Sequence record: OR413581.1
Strand: one strand, 5' to 3'
DNA: 64,000 nt
Shown here one piece after another: positions 8,987 to 30,342 of the stretch. The translations under genes were made by a program, and so were the position numbers. How positions within the stretch are numbered: position 1 is the stretch's first letter; each line of letters starts with the position of its first letter. The notes beneath the pieces were generated by a model that was not told the DNA's origin, searched no databases, and saw only the letters and a program-made list of their open reading frames with translations.

Positions 8987-10120
8987 ATGATGAACTATGA
9001 ACGTAAGCACGCGTGGCAAGAAAAGCTACGCACGGGGCAGATACATTCTGCCCAACAAGTGAAGATGTGGGTGCTGCCGCACGGCGTCATCTGCGAAATG
9101 GTCCAGGTCGGGGGATTACCTATTCTTCGAAATGGCAAATACGATTCGATGAACACGGTACTCGCGCGCTTGCTGGCCGATGCAGGCATAATGGGTACCG
9201 TGATTTTATATTCAACCGCAACGATTCCTCAGAACCTTTCTCGCTGGTTAACACATTGGCTTTCCAATGACCCTAGCGAGGATGATCCGTGGCTACGTTC
9301 GATGACAGTGACAACAATGGGTCAACGGCCGACGAAACCCCTCCCATTCCAGGTCAATGTAATTGAACCAGCTATTCTGGAAGCGGGTGAAGTGTTTGAA
9401 GCAATCAAACATCGATCTCGCGATGTTAGCATCAGTCAGTTTCTTATCGAAGCGAATGATGTGACTTACCGGCTGGAGCCTGTACGACGTATGGACGCTC
9501 GTATCGTCGACTGCACAGAGTTCGGTTATGTCTTGCGTACACAGGGCAACCATACCTTCCTGGCATCGATGCTCTCTCGCCGCGTGCAGGGACAGTTAGC
9601 ACACTACAAAGTGTCCCCTGCTGACCTCGTCGGTACCGACGTTAAGGTCGAATACACAATGTTTACCGAAGGGAATCGACTGTGTAATTTTAAGTCTCCG
9701 GTAGTCTATCGGAGTAAGGCACTTGATGCCTTAGGCGACCAGAATGTCCCGACATACGATGGCCCCTATCCGTTTAAATCGCAAGCATCTGCAAACCGTG
9801 CGCTCCTTACGGTAACTCGGTGTAAACGCGCAGCGATCACACGGACCGATGGGGAAATTTATGGTAAGGACACTGAGTCTGACGCAAAACTCTTTTCGTT
9901 CCGGCGGGGTGTGAAACCTGGATTGTATGCCGCGACGTTTGAAAAGGGGGATGACGTCGAGTTCTGGCAGTTCGACAGCGATTTTGCAGTAGATGCGATT
10001 GACCCAGATGCGTTAGTGAGTGTCATCACAGACCAAATCTTTTACGCGACGGGTATGAGTCTGCTGGAAATCTTTTTAATGTACGATGCCAGAGTACCTT
10101 CACAGTCAGTCAAAACGTAA
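8987..10120 (+). CDS. Hypothetical protein, possible degenerate ATP-dependent DNA ligase fold
   Basis: 377 aa. LRNGK, LEPVRRMDARIV and GTDVKVEY..T.G segments echo ligase motifs, but there is no KxDG lysine. Confidence 0.6.
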   Translation: MMNYERKHAWQEKLRTGQIHSAQQVKMWVLPHGVICEMVQVGGLPILRNGKYDSMNTVLARLLADAGIMGTVILYSTATIPQNLSRWLTHWLSNDPSEDDPWLRSMTVTTMGQRPTKPLPFQVNVIEPAILEAGEVFEAIKHRSRDVSISQFLIEANDVTYRLEPVRRMDARIVDCTEFGYVLRTQGNHTFLASMLSRRVQGQLAHYKVSPADLVGTDVKVEYTMFTEGNRLCNFKSPVVYRSKALDALGDQNVPTYDGPYPFKSQASANRALLTVTRCKRAAITRTDGEIYGKDTESDAKLFSFRRGVKPGLYAATFEKGDDVEFWQFDSDFAVDAIDPDALVSVITDQIFYATGMSLLEIFLMYDARVPSQSVKT

Positions 10121-10130
10121 GGAGCCTCCT

Positions 10131-10640
10131 ATGTTTACTGCGCCAACCGTGCAGGTGGGGCAAGGTCTTAACTTGGTGGTACACGACCAGCGGTTAATCG
10201 ACCTCTGCGACACAAGCATAATTACTGCGATGATGGACCATAACCCTTTAGGTGACTACGGAAATACCAGCGAGATTTTGGCTGTTGCTGCCGTCCTCCG
10301 TCGTATTTACGGTCAAATAACCATCGTAGATCTCTGTAACTTCATTGACAACCACAGAGATTTAACTAAAGGGTTGGTCGCACTTACTCAAGATGGGGTG
10401 TCAAGTTTTGACAGTTCTCTTGGTAATTTCCTAGACATCGGTTCCGGGTTCGACTCCGGGCTAATGTTCATCACTCGTGAACGCTACGTCGCCGTCTGGG
10501 AATTTCTGCAACGCATGGGTGTGCATGTTCCTGCAAAGATCATGCATTACCAAACTTACGACCTGAATATTTTCGGGGAGCCAGGGTTATGGATAAAACC
10601 AGTACACCTTGGCCTTGATGGCTACACCATCAAGTGTTAA
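10131..10640 (+). CDS. Hypothetical protein
   Basis: ATG at 10131 follows AAGGAG; ends at a strong terminator. Confidence 0.7.
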   Translation: MFTAPTVQVGQGLNLVVHDQRLIDLCDTSIITAMMDHNPLGDYGNTSEILAVAAVLRRIYGQITIVDLCNFIDNHRDLTKGLVALTQDGVSSFDSSLGNFLDIGSGFDSGLMFITRERYVAVWEFLQRMGVHVPAKIMHYQTYDLNIFGEPGLWIKPVHLGLDGYTIKC

Positions 10641-10647
10641 GTCACTA

Positions 10648-10697
10648 GGCGTACTCTCTTCGGGGAGTACGCCAATCTTATTTTTTTTTATTTTTTT
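10648..10697 (+). terminator. Rho-independent terminator
   Basis: GGCGTACTCTC-TTCG-GGGAGTACGCC plus a long T tract. Confidence 0.9.
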
Positions 10698-11262
10698 GGT
10701 TACTTTTTAACCAACCGGTTAAAGGGGTCTGGGAAGCATCAGAAAACGATTAGGTGGTATCGACGTAGGGTAGCTCGTTTTTGGCAGTTTATCGTTTTCT
10801 AGGGTCGGTTACGTGCGTTTTAGAGGGGGTTATGTATCGAGACAGAGAATTTATTTTTGTCGGGGCGAGGAAATTCAGGGAATGGGGATTCAGGATTGTA
10901 TGTTTTTTAACCAGTTATTAAAAACGCTCTAGAAAGCGCTAGAACGAGATTTAACTCAGACCCAGTACACTTGGGTTCCCCATACCGGAAAATCGCGCCA
11001 GCGGGCCGCTGAGAGCGCGAGAGTGCCATTCCCGTTTCGGTTCCGGGACGACGGTCGCGGCCGGCGACGACGATCACACGTTGGGTAGCACTTCGTGCCA
11101 TGTCTGGGTGAAAACTGGATCGTTCTGTAACCGACACACACTGTCGGTTACTTACGAGTTCTTTGGGTTGTTTAACTCGCTCTAAAATCCCCCTTAGGGG
11201 ATAATTTAATCTAATTCTCAAAATTTCTTTTTAAAACAATCACTTAGATTGTTTTTTAGATT

Positions 11263-11484
11263 GATCCTGTGGATCGGGTCGAAGACCCTTTCCTTATACG
11301 CGTGCGCGTGCGCACACCCGTATCCTCCAGGATCTTTTAAAATATATAATAATATTAAATATAATAATACCTTTAGGTATTATATTTAATTATTATAATT
11401 ATTTATATAAATAAATATATTAATATATTAAGATCTTAAAACGCGTGCAGGCGCGCGCGTGATCCTTATTAAGAGATCGTGATC
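11263..11484. other. Candidate replication origin / DNA-unwinding element
   Basis: 7 GATC in 222 bp, a 106-nt core (11335-11440) with only 6 G/C, several perfect palindromes and alternating purine-pyrimidine flanks. Confidence 0.5.
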
Positions 11485-11769
11485 GGACGGAAGTCCTAGT
11501 TTGGGTACCCTGTGTATTTTTTACGTGGTTTCCCTATCGTGTGTTCAGACCACCACTCGATGTCCAAAAACCCATAGCTTCGGTGGTCGCCTCCCTGGTC
11601 GGTAGACTCTGACAAGTCGACCCACAACACCAACCCGTCCGGGGACGGATTTTTATTCCAACGACAAGCTCCACGAAAATCCCCGCAGAGGGACTCACTG
11701 CTGTGTGACTCACCGGCTCCTGGACGCCTACGCCTCGAGCCGGTAATTTTTTGATTACGTGAGTTTGTT

Positions 11770-12360
11770 GTTATATGCGAATAGCGATTGACCGCGCCAA
11801 TGGTCCAATCACTTTTAAACCCTGCACGCTAGGGCTCCAAGTCCTGGGATTGTTACCCAGGACGCTTTTTCGAAAATACCTACCGTGGTGTCTTCGACAA
11901 AGCGCAATCTAACACTGCGTGATTTATTATGTTCTGGAAAACTTTCGCCGTGGAACAGAACCGGTGAGCGTCGGCGGGGATTCCGACAATCACCACCCAT
12001 TCAGGTACTCGGTAAATAACCGACCTGCCGACGTAGCACCGTCGGGCGTAGTTCGGTTTGCGAGAGTGTCGAGAAAGTCGACTGCGCACCCATGACAAAA
12101 TCCGAGTTGACCGTGGCAGCGCCAGAGGACTGGGCAGCGGAGAGACGTCGTTGAACTTACCTCCGATAGTTATCGCTGATTCCGCTCTGGCGTCGGGCCA
12201 AAACTGATTCGAATTCGGCGTTGCGTCGAAAAGGGGTCTGCGTGTAGAACCGCAGACTTGGGGGATAACTCCGATGAGGAGGTTGGTCCATATCTTGCCG
12301 GCTCGGAACAGACGAGAGGGGTGGGTACTCCCGTTGAGAAACGCCAGTACCTGGCTGATT
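11770..12360 (+). ncRNA. Candidate large structured non-coding RNA A
   Basis: No credible ORF; many stems plus a long-range 8-bp pair 12002-12009/12346-12353. Strand is inferred. Confidence 0.4.
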
Positions 12361-12369
12361 AAAATTTAC
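12361..12369 (+). promoter_or_regulatory. AAAATTTAC motif (middle-promoter-like)
   Basis: Copy of the motif at 8930 and 34758, upstream of ORF 12413. Confidence 0.5.
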
Positions 12370-12412
12370 AGATTCTGCGTGAGGTATGATAAACCAAACG
12401 GAGAATTAAATC

Positions 12413-12904
12413 ATGACCACGATAGCGTTCGATGGAAAAGTCTTAGCTGCTGACGGCCAGTTAACCCGTGGGTCGAATATCTGCAACCTGAATACCCAGA
12501 AGTTATTCATCTGCCCTTCTGACGAGGAGTGGTGGATTACTGGTGAACGGATTGTGGCGTTCGGAGTAAGCGGCGACATCACAGGACAATTGGCCCTGCT
12601 GGAAACGGTCCGCTTGAGACCCGGCTACAAGGGGTTAACACAAAGCTCGCAGTTACCTGCGAAGATGGATTTTACTTTCCTGATGCTTCTGGCCTCAGGG
12701 AAAGCGATAGTCGGTGGGAAGCGTGAAGACGACGTGTCGTTGTGGTGGAGTGAAGCCACACCACCTCTGGCAACCGGAAGCGGTTACGAGTATGCGTTGG
12801 GTGCGATGAAGATGGGCGCGAATGCGGTTCGTGCTGTTGAGATTGCGTCCGAATGCGATATCTACACCGGTGGTGAGATTAGCACTTACGAACTACGGAG
12901 GTGA
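12413..12904 (+). CDS. HslV/proteasome beta-subunit-like Ntn threonine peptidase
   Basis: N-terminus M-TTIAFDGKVLAADGQ, GSG motif and C-terminal DIYTGG; GGAG SD. Confidence 0.7.
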   Translation: MTTIAFDGKVLAADGQLTRGSNICNLNTQKLFICPSDEEWWITGERIVAFGVSGDITGQLALLETVRLRPGYKGLTQSSQLPAKMDFTFLMLLASGKAIVGGKREDDVSLWWSEATPPLATGSGYEYALGAMKMGANAVRAVEIASECDIYTGGEISTYELRR

Positions 12905-12997
12905 ATCATGCGGGAGTCAGAAGCACGCAAGCTTGACCCCATCAATCGCCTGCGATAACGGGGTAGCGCATCCGTATAAACACGTTTAAAGAATTCT

Positions 12998-13073
12998 GGG
13001 GGTATGGCGCAATTGGTAGCGCACCGGTCTCCAAAACCGAAGGTTCGAGGTTCGAAACCTCGTGCCCCCGCCA
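12998..13073 (+). tRNA. trnW: tRNA-Trp (CCA)
   Basis: 76-nt cloverleaf: GGGGGTA/TGCCCCC acceptor, GCGC D stem, loop CT-CCA-AA, T arm CGAGG-TTCGAAA-CCTCG, encoded CCA end. Confidence 0.95.
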
Positions 13074-13137
13074 CATTTAGCCAACGAATTCAGGTTCAAC
13101 ACAGAAGACACAGATTTGTCAACTGTTGGAGAACAAC

Positions 13138-13380
13138 ATGAATTTGTACTTGCTAGAACGAACTGACGATATCGGGTATGATGAATTTGATTCCATAATC
13201 GTGGCGGCTCCTACGGAGCAAGCCGCGTGTGCAATTCCTCCCGACCGTGGTCATTGGATGGACTGCCGCTGGTTACCGAAAGAGCGCTGGGATGAAGGGC
13301 TTACCCTGACCGTTACTCTTATCGGCACTACGCACTATCCTGCTGGGACCGTCGTTCATGAATCGTTCAATGCTGGCTAA
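13138..13380 (+). CDS. Small phage hypothetical protein
   Basis: GGAG SD before ATG 13138; MNLYLLERTD...SFNAG resembles a widespread small phage protein family (recalled, not searched). Confidence 0.75.
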   Translation: MNLYLLERTDDIGYDEFDSIIVAAPTEQAACAIPPDRGHWMDCRWLPKERWDEGLTLTVTLIGTTHYPAGTVVHESFNAG

Positions 13381-13382
13381 AC

Positions 13383-13960
13383 AGTGGGCTTCGGCCCACT
13401 AACCCTATTCGAGCCGTGATACTTACTCAGATTGTGCGGGTTGATGTCCCGCATGAGCCGGTAGCAGCTCAGACCTACGGTAGACCAATAAATCCGTAGC
13501 AGCCAGGTACACAAAGCACCAGGTCGCTTGTACAGGATGCTGGGTATCTGACCGGTCATAACCTCATTCGATACGAGACACGTTTATGCATGAAATACTC
13601 CAGTACATCAGGATGTTGATTTCCAACGTCCGGTTCTGGGTATTCAATCATGTTTGGTTTACAGGCGATGGGTTTTCCCGCAAGGGCCCCACTTACAGAC
13701 TGGCGTCTCCACGACAACCGTCCCTAGGGGACAGGCAAGCACCGGCCCATTAAGCCGCTACGCTACGCCTGTAAATCCACAATCTGATAACCGAATGGGA
13801 TTGAGTTCCCAGTGTTAGGGTGACTGTGTGTCACCGTAGGCGCGGTACCTCATACGGCCGGTACGCCACGAATGTACGTGATAGCGGGTGGTGCTTGGAG
13901 ACGCTAAGACCTGACCTTGCGGCCAGGCTCAGAAGAAGAAGTCCATCGCCCGCATTCAGA
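13383..13960 (+). ncRNA. Candidate large structured non-coding RNA B
   Basis: No credible ORF; starts with a UUCG hairpin, has at least 7 stems and a 10-bp long-range helix 13658-13667/13766-13775. Confidence 0.45.
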
Positions 13961-14161
13961 AATGAATTTAGGTTAATTATTATTTATGGAAGTGATGAAA
14001 TCGTTTACGTGATAACTTAGTAGTATGCAACGAACAATACCAGAGTGACTTTACGAGGTTACTGTGGTATATGTCGGTGCTCCGGGCAACGTGTTGCCGC
14101 AGATAAGCCCGAGGGAGCTGAGTGCACTAACACACGCCGGGATGCACCGGCACCTTACAAC

Positions 14162-14231
14162 GGCTTTGTAGCTCAGGTAGGTAGAGCAGCCTCTTTGAGG
14201 AAGGTCGCCGGTTCGAGACCGGTCAAAGCAA
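14162..14231 (+). tRNA. tRNA-like element with collapsed anticodon arm (pseudo-tRNA)
   Basis: Canonical D arm (GCTC..GAGC) and T arm (GCCGG-TTCGAGA-CCGGT) and a 6-bp acceptor; the anticodon arm is CCTC-TTT-GAGG, about 4 nt short; no CCA. Confidence 0.7.
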
Positions 14232-14310
14232 GAGCAGCGAAGTTAGAGGAATTAACACCCGACTCATAATCGGATATTTCGACGGTTCGAATCCGTCCGT
14301 TTGCTCGCCC
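14232..14310 (+). tRNA. Atypical tRNA with CAT anticodon (Met or Ile2)
   Basis: Anticodon arm CCCGA-CTCATAA-TCGGA, T arm GACGG-TTCGAAT-CCGTC; the acceptor stem pairs only with a bulge; no clean CCA. Confidence 0.7.
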
Positions 14311-14389
14311 CATTTGTGTTATCCTTATCCCGAAGGCATTCGAAATAAGACGCGTATCCACACACGGGTCAAGGGTAACACGAACCACT

Positions 14390-14650
14390 TCCGCGGTCAC
14401 CGTGTCCATTGCCGCCTACCTGCATGGGCTGTCCTCCGACACGGTGACTTCGGGCCAACTTACAGGCCAGGGCCGTTTGGGTTTTTCTTACGCATCCATC
14501 CAGAGCCACCTCGCGCCCTAGTCTGTATACCCCTTTTCTGTTCCTGGTTTGCCAACTAAATCAATTAAGCCTGGTGCGTTGCCCTGGGAACAGAAAAACT
14601 TATTCGGTTACACACCGAACCCACCCACGAGGGATATGTCGTGGACTACC
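14390..14650 (+). ncRNA. Candidate structured non-coding RNA C downstream of the tRNA pair
   Basis: Two perfect 11-bp helices (14396-14406/14438-14448; 14534-14544/14587-14597) plus smaller hairpins. Confidence 0.35.
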
Positions 14651-14685
14651 AATAGAAGCAGCAATAGTAGTAAGAAGGAAGCAAC

Positions 14686-15507
14686 ATGTTTACAGTTAAA
14701 CGTGTAATTGATGGTGACCGCATTATTACCGAGCATGAAAAGGTTCGTATCGGTGACCGTAAGTCTCGTGTATTCCGCGAGGCATTAAAAATGCTCGAGA
14801 ACGAGCGCTTCGACATCGTTGTCGATGATGAAAAGTTAGCCCTTAATCCGGGGTTAAAACGCGTTGCCCCTGATGTGCCTGATCCGAACACCATGCATTT
14901 GTCTGACTACTGCAGCTGGTCGCACAGATTATATAAAAGTCAGGTTTATGCACACACGTATTTGCGGCAGCTTTTCCCCAACCTTATTATCCCCGATTTG
15001 GAAACGGTCGAGGTGTTTAACTGCAACGCACGCGAGTTTATTAGCTACGTGCTAGATAATAAGGGCAATGCTATCTTGGTACTGGACACAAATTCCCGCA
15101 TACCTGATGCTGTGGCTAGCATACGTGGTGAAATCATCGGTTACGGTACTTCCCCAGAGAAATTAGGCTGGTACAAACCATCTCCTGATAGCGACATGGC
15201 GATCATTGTCTACACTCAGGAAGAACTGCAACAAGTCGAATTAGAGCCTGGTCCATCTATCGAGTTCACTGATGTCCAGGAGCAGTCGCAGTGGATTAAC
15301 GGTGAGTCTGTTGTTACTGTTTTAAAAGGCGCTCGCCCTGGCGACCGGTCAGTCGATGAACTGATTGGCGCAATGTGCATCGAAGAAGAATCTGGATACG
15401 ATCCTGATAACCAGATCAGTACCGGTGCGTTGTACGAACTGTTTTATAAAGGCGACGAAGTCTACGTGGTTAACTCTCACGGTAAGACTACCGACGTCCT
15501 TCGCTGA
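14686..15507 (+). CDS. Hypothetical protein
   Basis: 273-aa ORF with AAGGA SD. Confidence 0.8.
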   Translation: MFTVKRVIDGDRIITEHEKVRIGDRKSRVFREALKMLENERFDIVVDDEKLALNPGLKRVAPDVPDPNTMHLSDYCSWSHRLYKSQVYAHTYLRQLFPNLIIPDLETVEVFNCNAREFISYVLDNKGNAILVLDTNSRIPDAVASIRGEIIGYGTSPEKLGWYKPSPDSDMAIIVYTQEELQQVELEPGPSIEFTDVQEQSQWINGESVVTVLKGARPGDRSVDELIGAMCIEEESGYDPDNQISTGALYELFYKGDEVYVVNSHGKTTDVLR

Positions 15508-28618: not shown

Positions 28619-29986
28619 GTGAGAAAGGTACCAAAATTCTACGGAATATCCGGCCGGTTGGTTAGTCAGGATAACTATTTGTCCGATTTGCAAATAGAAG
28701 CTGCTGCCAAAGGTATTAAACCACCCACTATTATTAACGATGTCGCCGTTAACGGGGATGCGATCGAGGTTGCTGAACTTATCGATCGCATGGTACAGAA
28801 CAGAATCGTTGACGAAGAACTGAACTCTGCACCGATTTGTAGTTTGGATTGTCCGGCACCGATCGCGCATCGTTACAATCTCGGTTGTAAGTGTCCGACG
28901 TGTGGCTATGTTGTAACTGAACATCGAATTGAATCCGATGTCTGGTTACGTGCACCTGATGAAATGGGTAACTTCGTCAACCCACGATTCTGGGCAATGT
29001 TCAATGCTTTCTTTAATAGCAAGTTGAAGAAGTTTGAACGTAACAAGGTCACTATCGAACGCGGTAATGACTTGATGATGTGGATGATTGACCCGTATTA
29101 CCGTATAGAAGAACCAGACGGTAAACGCGCACATGCTGTGAAACGTGTATTGGAAGAACATGGTTTCGTTCGTGGCTTGCGCAATCTGGTTGATAACCAC
29201 GTTAGTATCTTTAACATCCTTACCACGCCAGAAGCCTGGAAGGAAATCTTCGCACCTAATCGGCATAACGCCGCTGAAGGTGAACGCTTACGTTTACAAT
29301 GGAAGGAGCTATTCGAAACACAACGCCACGCATTCTTCCCAAGACACTTACCGTTAATCTCCTCTAAGCTTATTGTTACTGAGGAAGGTCGACGTGGTGT
29401 CATGGTAGACCCAGTGTTCACGGGTGCTATTGACGCGGTGAAAAATATCGCGTTGCTCTATACGCGGCGTAAAGCGATCGAACCACGTTTTCTGATTAGT
29501 CGCGCTTTGAAGGCGAACCGTCAGTTAACGTACTTCCACATGGACTTCCGTCGTGAGTCTATGGAAGGTAAACCGGGTGACTATCGTGCGAAATTGGGTT
29601 CTACCCATATCCCGTTCGGTGGTCGTGCAACCATCTCACCTATCTCAGAACCACACGATGCCTGGAAGTTAAAAGCACCATGGCGTTGGATGGTTGGGTT
29701 GATGTCGACCCACATCGAGAACAAACTGCTACGACGGGGTTATTCGTCACGGCAATGTGAGCGTATCGTTGCAAAAGCGGCAATGCAGTATGACCCGCTT
29801 GTAGATGAAATCTTTAAAGAACTGATTCGTGAATCCCCAGGCGGTCTTGGGATCATGGTCATACCGTTACGTAACCCAACGCTGGTACAGTTGTCTATTC
29901 AAACGCTGTACATCGATGAAGTTGTTACCGATGTTAACCAGTGTTCGCTGCGTATCTCTGACCGTGTGATCAAGATGGCTAACGGT
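28619..29986 (+). CDS. rpoC: Non-virion RNA polymerase beta-prime N-terminal subunit, exon 1
   Basis: Zn-finger CSLDC...CKCPTCG, GKPGDYR, RNPTL motif; ends ...KMANG at the group I 5' splice site. Confidence 0.85.
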
Positions 29987-30342
29987 TCGAAAAGAGCCCC
30001 ATCGGACGGGAAACCTCTGATGCGTATTCTCCTGAAATGCTGGGAAACCCTAAAGCGTATCTACCAGAAATGGGGACGAAAGTCTGAAACAACAGATACG
30101 ATGACCTACGCTAAACAATACTGCTAAGGGTTGTGTTAATGGGTAATCAGCAGCGAAGCCTCGTGAGAGGAACGTTCAACGACTATCGCTGAAATGCGAG
30201 TAGGGGTCCCAGTGGACTTCGAAGTGGGAGAACACCTAAGGCGAAAGCTATGGTGAAGATATAGTCTGTGCCTTATCGAGAGATAAGGAGGGTGTCTTAG
30301 CACACCTGCTGTATACGGAAACGGTATACAGTGGACAAACAG
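29987..30342 (+). mobile_element. Group I self-splicing intron without ORF (356 nt)
   Basis: P AAATGCTGGGAAA 30035-47, Q AATCAGCAGC 30145-54, R GTTCAACGACTAT 30174-86, S AAGATATAGTC 30256-66; P1 GGU|UC-GAAAA-GAGCC with the U.G wobble; terminal G at 30342; splicing restores the frame. Confidence 0.92.

Follow-up and report, generated by a model that had tools for sequence, protein, structure and literature searches.

The RNAs that most closely resemble the element described here belong to the ROOL and GOLLD classes. GOLLD, of ~800 nt, occurs beside tRNAs in phages of Lactobacillales and in lake metagenomes, and ROOL, frequently carried by prophages and close to tRNA genes, is known from rumen and Firmicutes elements. 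ROOL/GOLLD-type ornate RNAs are described in a preprint (bioRxiv 10.1101/2024.12.08.627333) as forming RNA-only homo-oligomeric assemblies.

We analysed a stretch of 64,000 nucleotides from record OR413581.1 (hereafter, the window) and found a locus that recalls both classes. Like ROOL, the RNA, of ~500–600 nt, has many helices, is phage-borne, lies near tRNA genes and is likewise unassigned in function; as with GOLLD, a very large structured phage RNA next to tRNA genes combines variable peripheral domains with a conserved core. It differs from ROOL in that it matches no Rfam model at E<10 and is carried by Enterobacterales jumbo phages, and from GOLLD in the lack of an Rfam match, in its unrelated conserved motifs and in its restriction to one jumbo-phage clade. 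The likeness to ROOL or GOLLD proposed in the initial annotation thus stands for size and genomic setting but not for membership, since Rfam searches of the window and of four divergent homologues gave no hit to either class. We consider it likely that positions 11841–12357 (+ strand) are the conserved unit of an RNA family missing from the catalogues, made up of large structured non-coding molecules of about 520 to 900 bases and carried by SPN3US-like Salmonella and related Erwinia jumbo phages.

Genomic setting and distribution of the locus

The window is Salmonella phage SPLA3 (OR413581.1), with 100% identity and agreeing coordinates (megablast of positions 10600–14700). SPLA3 is a Seoulvirus, an SPN3US-like jumbo phage. 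The RNA locus lies within a 1,772-nt intergenic gap (10641–12412), with a hypothetical gene on one side and the gene of an HslV-like peptidase on the other. The gap has no annotation in SPLA3, SPLA5c or phage 1252. Among other relatives, some records annotate short ORFs over the homologous region, for example Huxley gp278 (137 aa). Window genes are mostly on the + strand from position 8987 on, the switch in orientation being at ~8950. A tRNA-Trp gene (12998–13073), the sole ARAGORN detection, is found 640 nt downstream of the RNA region, in keeping with the tRNA-proximal position noticed earlier.

Rfam 15 (4,227 families) was searched with cmscan using the window at the gathering score, positions 10500–14800 at E≤10 and four divergent homologues at E≤1. 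At the gathering score the window contained only tRNAs, all outside the region, and a group I intron elsewhere (RF00028, 29967–30288). Nothing was detected in 10500–14800 at E≤10 or in the four homologues at E≤1, and neither ARAGORN nor Rfam detected a tRNA, tmRNA or other Rfam small RNA in the RNA region. The proposal of a large RNA outside known classes, for which the initial annotation had suggested precisely this Infernal search, is consistent with these results. Our literature search yielded neither a paper describing such an RNA nor transcriptome data for an SPN3US-like phage, and nothing relevant on promoters or jumbo-phage large RNAs. With no Rfam relative and no published description found, the family is apparently undescribed.

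The longest ORF overlapping the region has 72 codons' worth of residues (72 aa), and no Pfam match was obtained for three ORFs of the region, one ORF of the left-hand gap, the Huxley 137-aa ORF, the extra downstream ORF of SPLA5c or four flanking genes; the earlier judgement that the region holds no credible ORF was therefore upheld. The short ORFs of some records (gp278 of Huxley among them) and those of 58–72 aa at this place in the window might suggest small coding sequences or the remains of a protein gene. This explanation is extremely improbable: the tested ORFs have no Pfam match, the annotated small ORFs are inconsistent in position and strand between relatives, substitutions fall in compensating pairs, indels are not multiples of three, and the most conserved 30 nt lack synonymous-type variation and carry a 1-nt indel (in the loop of helix H7, see below) that would shift any reading frame.

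Folding-energy z-scores were −3.3 (+ strand) and −3.1 (− strand) for 11770–12360, and −7.3 for 11436–12412 (20 shuffles only). As folding energy alone is weak evidence, relatives were sought. By sensitive blastn, the whole gap matches at 95–99% in SPN3US-like phages and can be aligned over its whole length in SPAsTU (71%) and Erwinia phage pEa_SNUABM_29 (67%). Only conserved islands, comprising an AT-rich block (11287–11486) and the 3′ part (12110–12405), are detected in Erskinevirus (phiEaH2, Asesino), Machinavirus (Huxley and others), Wellingtonvirus (Kwan) and further Erwinia phages. Aligning the 3′ part exposed a near-invariant core of ~30 nt (12291–12321), and scans with it returned 12 viral contigs and nine true metagenomic loci, giving a total of ~11 distinct lineages (Seoulvirus, Erskinevirus, Machinavirus, Wellingtonvirus and metagenomic relatives).

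Three core-pattern matches in 185,579 bacterial and archaeal genomes were rejected as chance, with ~40–48% identity to real members and 10–17 bits under R1, a covariance model of the 3′ domain that scores the window at 245.7 bits (12101–12360). According to R1, the RNA is single-copy in the window. Looser patterns returned 86 further viral loci (L049–L126, L162–L169), none above 17 bits with R1, and no new members. The Derbicusvirus phages (CR5, Derbicus, Phobos) have the upstream 377-aa gene in common with SPLA3 but lack the RNA: R1 has no match in them and their gap measures ~420–550 nt versus 1.77 kb in SPLA3. CR5_001, considered as an HslV homologue, was rejected. As judged from the loci found so far, the family appears confined to SPN3US-like and related Erwinia jumbo phages, a distribution specific to one clade that agrees with the idea of a jumbo-phage RNA.

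Kwan and Wellington carry a 634-nt HNH endonuclease cassette in place of 21 nt just 5′ of the core, within the 3′ domain. On both sides of it the sequence is 100% identical to that of a metagenomic relative without the insert, and all other lineages lack the cassette, which looks like a free-standing insertion. Since both phages are viable isolates, the RNA either tolerates a large insertion at this site or is dispensable in them. This interruption, like the lack of the RNA in Derbicusvirus, is a point against our reading of the locus.

The cassette bears on whether the locus might be a degenerate or unusual self-splicing intron or another ribozyme, with the Kwan HNH gene as its homing endonuclease. 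Phage group I introns, including the true one at 29967–30288 of the window, share with the SPLA3 RNA a large multi-helix structure, GNRA loops, a long-range closing helix, an invariant core and, in one lineage, an endonuclease ORF inside the RNA, comparable to the intron ORFs found in peripheral loops. We nevertheless regard this reading as highly unlikely. The RNA has no Rfam group I or II match even at E<10 and no recognisable P7/P3 core; it is intergenic, flanked by an AT-rich non-coding block and a separate ORF start, so that there is no interrupted ORF with exons to re-join; and the cassette is absent from all other lineages, including the one with 100% identical flanks.

A conserved fold on the + strand

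Covariation was assessed on MAFFT alignments of the 3′ domain (A3, 12103–12359) and the 5′ half (A4, 11832–12122), with 16 sequences from ~11 lineages, which gives moderate statistical power. As control, the 3′ partners were slid by 1–3 columns, preserving the relatedness of the sequences. The 3′ domain had 91.8% of cells paired (A3, 16 sequences) versus 39–47% when slid, and 23 pairs altered on both sides versus 6–11; its covariation score was 0.392 versus 0.07–0.11, a value reached by 0 of 500 shuffles. The 5′ half (A4) had 84.1% of cells paired versus 33–52%, with 27 pairs altered on both sides versus 4–8. The collection of homologues and the covariation analysis that had been proposed as a check thus gave compensatory pairs well beyond the slid controls in both parts (92% and 84% paired versus 33–52% overall). 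G·U cells outnumbered A·C cells by 204 to 34 over both alignments which, together with a GNRA loop on one strand, argues for RNA of the + strand rather than for the opposite strand or duplex DNA. These results indicate that the fold, rather than a reading frame, is kept by selection.

The five local helices first proposed exist and carry compensatory changes across the ~11 lineages: 11786–93/11802–10 (8 bp plus one bulge), 11841–48/11856–63 (8 perfect bp), 12028–33/12040–45 (6 bp), 12119–27/12185–93 and 12236–42/12251–57 (6–7 bp). The limits first given, 11770–12360, proved approximate; on the alignments, the conserved unit common to all lineages is 11841–12357 (+ strand). Homologous non-coding sequence reaches further 5′, to the AT-rich block at ~11440.

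The variable 5′ region (11441–11840, + strand) measures ~400 nt in SPLA3, ~140 nt in Huxley-type and ~300–330 nt in SNU4-type sequences. It contains the conserved motifs GTGATCCTTATTAAGAGATC, a T-run plus TTAC, and TGCTGTGTG, as well as terminator-like hairpins at 11635–57 and 11713–51. RNAalifold gave local hairpins over 11447–11840 with weak covariation (term +0.9) and no net signal. Its last part, 11770–11840, is a module of Seoulvirus and Erskinevirus only, with the invariant GUUAUAUGCGAAUAG (11770–84) and hairpins at 11786–11810 and 11820–34. When sequences were folded individually, the first of these hairpins was at the same position in all six Seoulvirus and Erskinevirus sequences, with a different stem sequence in Erskinevirus.

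The conserved unit begins with Ha (11841–48/11856–63), a GC-rich 8-bp hairpin with the shape of an intrinsic terminator. MAFFT misaligned this variable hairpin, so each lineage was folded separately: a hairpin of −10 to −18 kcal/mol was present in 14 of 14 lineage representatives, with differing stem sequences, and (G)CUUUUU directly follows it in every lineage. For the same reason, the paired percentages of the variable hairpins Ha, H5 and H6 in the MAFFT alignments are underestimates. The U-run is drawn into the stem of Hb, a three-part helix (11864–68/11899–903, 11870–74/11893–97 and 11876–80/11887–91) with 91.2% of cells paired and 7 of 15 pairs altered on both sides. Among these, C11865–G11902 is converted to U–A in SPAsTU and pEa_SNUABM_29. 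The U-run arm has a single compensatory event.

Near-invariant columns across clades follow at 11909–11934, comprising CUAACAC and GUUUAnUAUGUUC, which are probably unpaired. Hc (11931–36/11956–61), Hd (11963–67/11990–94) and He (11970–74/11983–87) are 86–92% paired with compensatory changes; Hd and He are limited to Seoulvirus and Erskinevirus, while UViG14-type sequences also have letters in the Hc columns. The segment 11995–12107 opens with ACCCAUUCAGGUA, invariant in Seoulvirus and Erskinevirus, and continues with Hx (12007–12/12102–07), which surrounds a lineage-specific insert containing the hairpin 12028–33/12040–45. Pairing of Hx is kept in Erskinevirus with a different sequence (UAUCGGC/GCCGGUA).

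The 3′ domain, of ~250 nt, is delimited by the long-range helix H1 (12111–16/12296–301; 98.8% paired). Within it are H2 (12119–27/12185–93; 9 bp, 93% paired), H3 (12147–50/12164–67; 95% paired) with the conserved loop GAACUUACC, the palindrome GAAUUC (12211–16), H4 (12216–20/12224–28; 96% paired) and H5 (12236–41/12252–57; 75% paired on the MAFFT alignment), followed by two alternative small helices around CUCC (12269–72). H1 adjoins the nearly invariant 30-nt core (12291–12321), which consists of AUCUUG(G)CGG, hairpin H7 (12302–05/12313–16) and AGGGG; the H7 loop has one extra base in SPN3US-like phages. H7 and most of H1 are invariant and hence outside the reach of covariation. The loops GAACUUACC and GUGUAGAACC and the GGUA motifs show complementarities by eye that may reflect tertiary contacts, with partners that are invariant or register-shifted between clades.

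Next to the core is the terminal GNRA hairpin (12319–12357). Its outer helix H8 (12319–29/12346–56) is 96.4% paired, with double changes in 8 of 14 pairs, and encloses H9 (12332–35/12340–43), whose tetraloop (12336–39) is GAGA, GUGA, GGGA or GCGA in 16 of 16 sequences; an invariant GCUG follows.

The initial annotation had closed a domain of the RNA by pairing CAGGTACT (12002–09) with AGTACCTG (12346–53), and had GGTACT (12324–29) compete for the same 3′ strand. The two segments are exact complements and GGTACT does pair with that strand, but the helix that closes the domain is H1. The distal pairing is 7–8/8 only in Seoulvirus and Erskinevirus and falls to 2–5/8, the level of chance, in the Huxley-, SNU4- and UViG14-type clades, where no other upstream complement to 12346–53 beats shuffled sequence. 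By contrast, the local pairing 12322–29/12346–53, part of H8, is 7–8/8 in every lineage, and most of its pairs show compensatory changes. The long-range complementarity is therefore real in sequence and conserved in two clades; judged across the alignment, it is not a family property, either as closure or as switch.

A riboswitch-like element in which 12346–53 alternates between the distal 12002–09 and the local 12324–29 strand accordingly appears unlikely. Two adjacent distal pairs are altered on both sides in Erskinevirus, which makes a clade-specific alternative pairing possible, and Watson–Crick pairs are more numerous in the distal than in the local duplex of both Seoulvirus and Erskinevirus. 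However, apart from the chance-level pairing of the other three clades, a change in the 3′ strand of pEa_SNUABM_29 is compensated in H8 and not in the distal strand, 12007–12 is engaged in the independently covarying Hx, and a 9-nt complement as good as that of SPLA3 arises in ~3% of shuffled upstream sequences.

The AT-rich block, the downstream genes and possible modes of action

The AT-rich block (11287–11440), with GC down to 0.11 and a palindrome at ~11364–11383, is conserved in all lineages and always upstream of the core, at 540–1030 nt depending on the lineage (1619 nt in Kwan, with its insert). Alternating CG/TG runs and a GATC cluster flank it, with seven GATC sites in 220 nt at the block versus 2.1 per kb in the window. 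The right half of the palindrome contains TAGGTATTAT (11374), one mismatch from AGATAGATATTATCT, a promoter-like motif that recurs seven times on the + strand; each of the four sites checked (15659, 26625, 35569 and 40728) immediately precedes a + strand ORF. AT-rich early promoters of ~10 nt, centred near −10, are known from jumbo phages that have their own RNA polymerases (PMC7598289). By analogy with these, rightward transcription from the block is plausible, and the block is a candidate promoter region for the RNA. Such transcription could yield a precursor of ~900 nt including the variable 5′ region; the expression, ends and abundance of the RNA are, at this stage, inferred from sequence.

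The block may also have an origin-like role. Structured RNAs that serve packaging or replication, such as phi29 pRNA and ColE1 RNA II, resemble the SPLA3 RNA in lying near a genome landmark, here the AT-rich, GATC-rich block; they differ in size and architecture, have no homology to it, and nothing in our data links the SPLA3 RNA to packaging or priming. Along the same lines, the conserved feature could act as DNA, as an origin of replication or a packaging site, with any transcript as primer or by-product. The GATC cluster and the GATC-containing A/T-rich repeats, which recall oriC 13-mers, would fit, as would the many genome records that begin inside this region and the cumulative GC skew, which is flat before ~9 kb and rises after it. 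Yet record starts differ between records and reflect the SPN3US numbering convention or assembly breaks, the skew changes at the gene-orientation switch (~8950) and not at the AT-rich block, and the tolerance of G·U but not A·C (204 versus 34) together with the one-strand GNRA loop points to RNA. We therefore hold a DNA-level element to be very unlikely.

Hairpins followed by a T-run are over-represented (13 versus 4.0 ± 1.8 expected). Those of terminator shape on the + strand at 11635, 11713 (by eye) and 11841 could split the region into several shorter RNAs. With its U-run drawn into Hb, Ha may instead be read through, or the region may give more than one RNA.

A further short stretch of interest is 12260–12289, with a G-run (12260–64), CUCC (12269–72) and GGAGGUUGGUCC (12278–89), the last of which has complementarity to the enterobacterial 16S rRNA 3′ end. 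The conserved element here is 12276–89 (consensus GGAGGUGAUCC). All 16 sequences have 7–13 contiguous complementary pairs at this place in the domain; at least 10 pairs are found in 3% of shuffles. CUCC can pair either with the GGAGGUGAUCC element or with the upstream G-run. We treat the complementarity as a lead and not a result, and any functional meaning would be inferred.

These features bear on the most substantial alternative, a long cis-acting leader of the rightward operon that works by attenuation, processive antitermination or as a translational operator instead of as a free RNA. As with cis-acting leaders (HK022 put, EAR and long riboswitch leaders), the locus lies between a promoter-like region and a co-directional operon, most window genes being on the + strand from 8987 on, and has terminator-shaped hairpins inside and upstream of the conserved unit, with the U-run of Ha able to pair downstream in Hb. 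The layout of G-run, CUCC and GGAGG resembles Shine–Dalgarno sequestration, and a + strand ORF starts 23–55 nt past H8 in each lineage.

The identity of that first ORF, however, varies by lineage. SPLA3, and probably phiEaH2, have the HslV-like gene in this place; SPLA5c, phage 1252, SPAsTU and pEa_SNUABM_29 have extra ORFs before it, and in Huxley and Kwan the RNA is followed by different, unannotated ORFs. No constant downstream gene or pathway, as a riboswitch or gene-specific leader would have, was thus found. This variation speaks against a leader tied to one gene, though an element acting on the whole operon would be compatible with it. Known leaders, put RNAs and EAR elements are far smaller than the >500 nt of covarying structure seen here, the SPLA3 RNA being 5–10 times larger, and Rfam finds no ligand-binding or put-like motif in it. 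In addition, the upstream half of the window's promoter-like motif is echoed by the conserved tail AAAUU(U/C)A, so the operon may have its own promoter, which would argue against a leader. Taken together, we judge a leader function possible but rather unlikely.

Of the modes considered, we tentatively favour a free-standing RNA acting through its three-dimensional fold, although we put its chances at somewhat less than even. Such an RNA would bind protein or the ribosome, or self-assemble, as other large ornate phage RNAs appear to; contacts would be made through the invariant core and the conserved loops. The conserved loops and the GAAUUC palindrome may in principle mediate a ROOL-like self-assembly. 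A more specific and quite speculative version, to which we give little probability, is that of a phage-made large RNA that engages ribosomes or self-assembles, in which CUCC and the G-run would expose or hide the GGAGGUGAUCC element.

Implications for jumbo phages

Large ornate phage RNAs without an assigned function are few, and the SPLA3 RNA is one more. Structured RNAs of more than ~500 nt are rare and have historically turned out to be ribozymes or cores of large machines; orphan classes such as ROOL, GOLLD and OLE are few and under active study, and the SPLA3 RNA would add a new one. Natural variants are at hand for structure–function work, namely the short Huxley-type form and the HNH-interrupted form of Kwan. 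SPN3US grows on laboratory Salmonella and a collection of its amber mutants exists (PMC7411985).

The phages that carry the RNA are relatives of phiKZ with their own multisubunit RNA polymerases, and their non-coding repertoire is almost unexplored. For phiKZ itself, transcriptome analysis predicted a single small RNA, of 75 nt, which Northern blotting did not confirm (PMC8244752). Should the ribosome-engaging version hold, whether by capture of host 30S subunits or by their delivery to phage messages, giant phages would have a viral RNA of a new class that acts on host translation.

Conserved non-coding segments upstream of the RNA

The AT-rich block that lies upstream of the candidate large structured RNA, and that is its candidate promoter region, occupies positions 11287-11486. 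This block is conserved, contains A/T-rich repeats that include GATC, and is flanked by alternating CG/TG runs. It has 7 GATC sites within 220 nt, versus 2.1 per kb across the window. Several GenBank records of related phages start within this block. It may serve as a divergent promoter region, or else as an unwinding element like that of an origin.

To its left, a second conserved non-coding segment (10895-11290) can be aligned among Seoul-, Erskine- and Machina-like phages. It contains conserved motifs as well as a hairpin and T-run on the minus strand (10946-10925). The segment is probably read from the minus strand and may encode a non-coding RNA running leftward; a check of the segment for covariation did not establish any.

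A recurrent promoter-like motif, and RNA matches elsewhere in the window

The motif AGATAGATATTATCT recurs at seven plus-strand sites in the window (15659, 18622, 26532, 26625, 35569, 36985 and 40728), with an AAATnTT-like stretch ahead of it. The four sites compared with the ORF list (15659, 26625, 35569 and 40728) are located just upstream of plus-strand ORFs. This motif is likely a phage promoter consensus, probably serving early genes.

Elsewhere, a second long gap (13381-14685), in which annotations of relatives place various tRNAs, contains two Rfam tRNA-like matches, 14162-14231 (37.1 bits) and 14234-14305 (30.6 bits); neither was called by ARAGORN, and neither is annotated in SPLA3. 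A group I intron with large peripheral insertions (29967-30288; RF00028, 68.9 bits) resides in a long plus-strand coding region.

A 16S-complementary element and insertions in and beside the RNA

Within the RNA, a conserved element at 12276-12289 is complementary to the 3' end of 16S rRNA, constituting an extended Shine-Dalgarno-like sequence. An invariant UUG follows at 12295, but no reading frame is conserved there.

In Erwinia phage Kwan, the 3' domain of the RNA is interrupted by a 634-nt cassette (L010:3312-3945) that bears an ORF for an HNH endonuclease and takes the place of 21 nt; the flanks of the cassette are 100% identical to the sequence of an insert-free metagenomic relative (L022). 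The cassette is also present in Wellington. Between the RNA 3' end and the downstream HslV-like peptidase gene, an additional ORF of 191 aa, for which Pfam gives no match, is inserted in SPLA5c (L002:2316-2891) and phage 1252 (L003:2312-2887). In SPAsTU and pEa_SNUABM_29, other additional ORFs occupy this position. As different ORFs have entered at one position, this spot is a hotspot for gene insertion.
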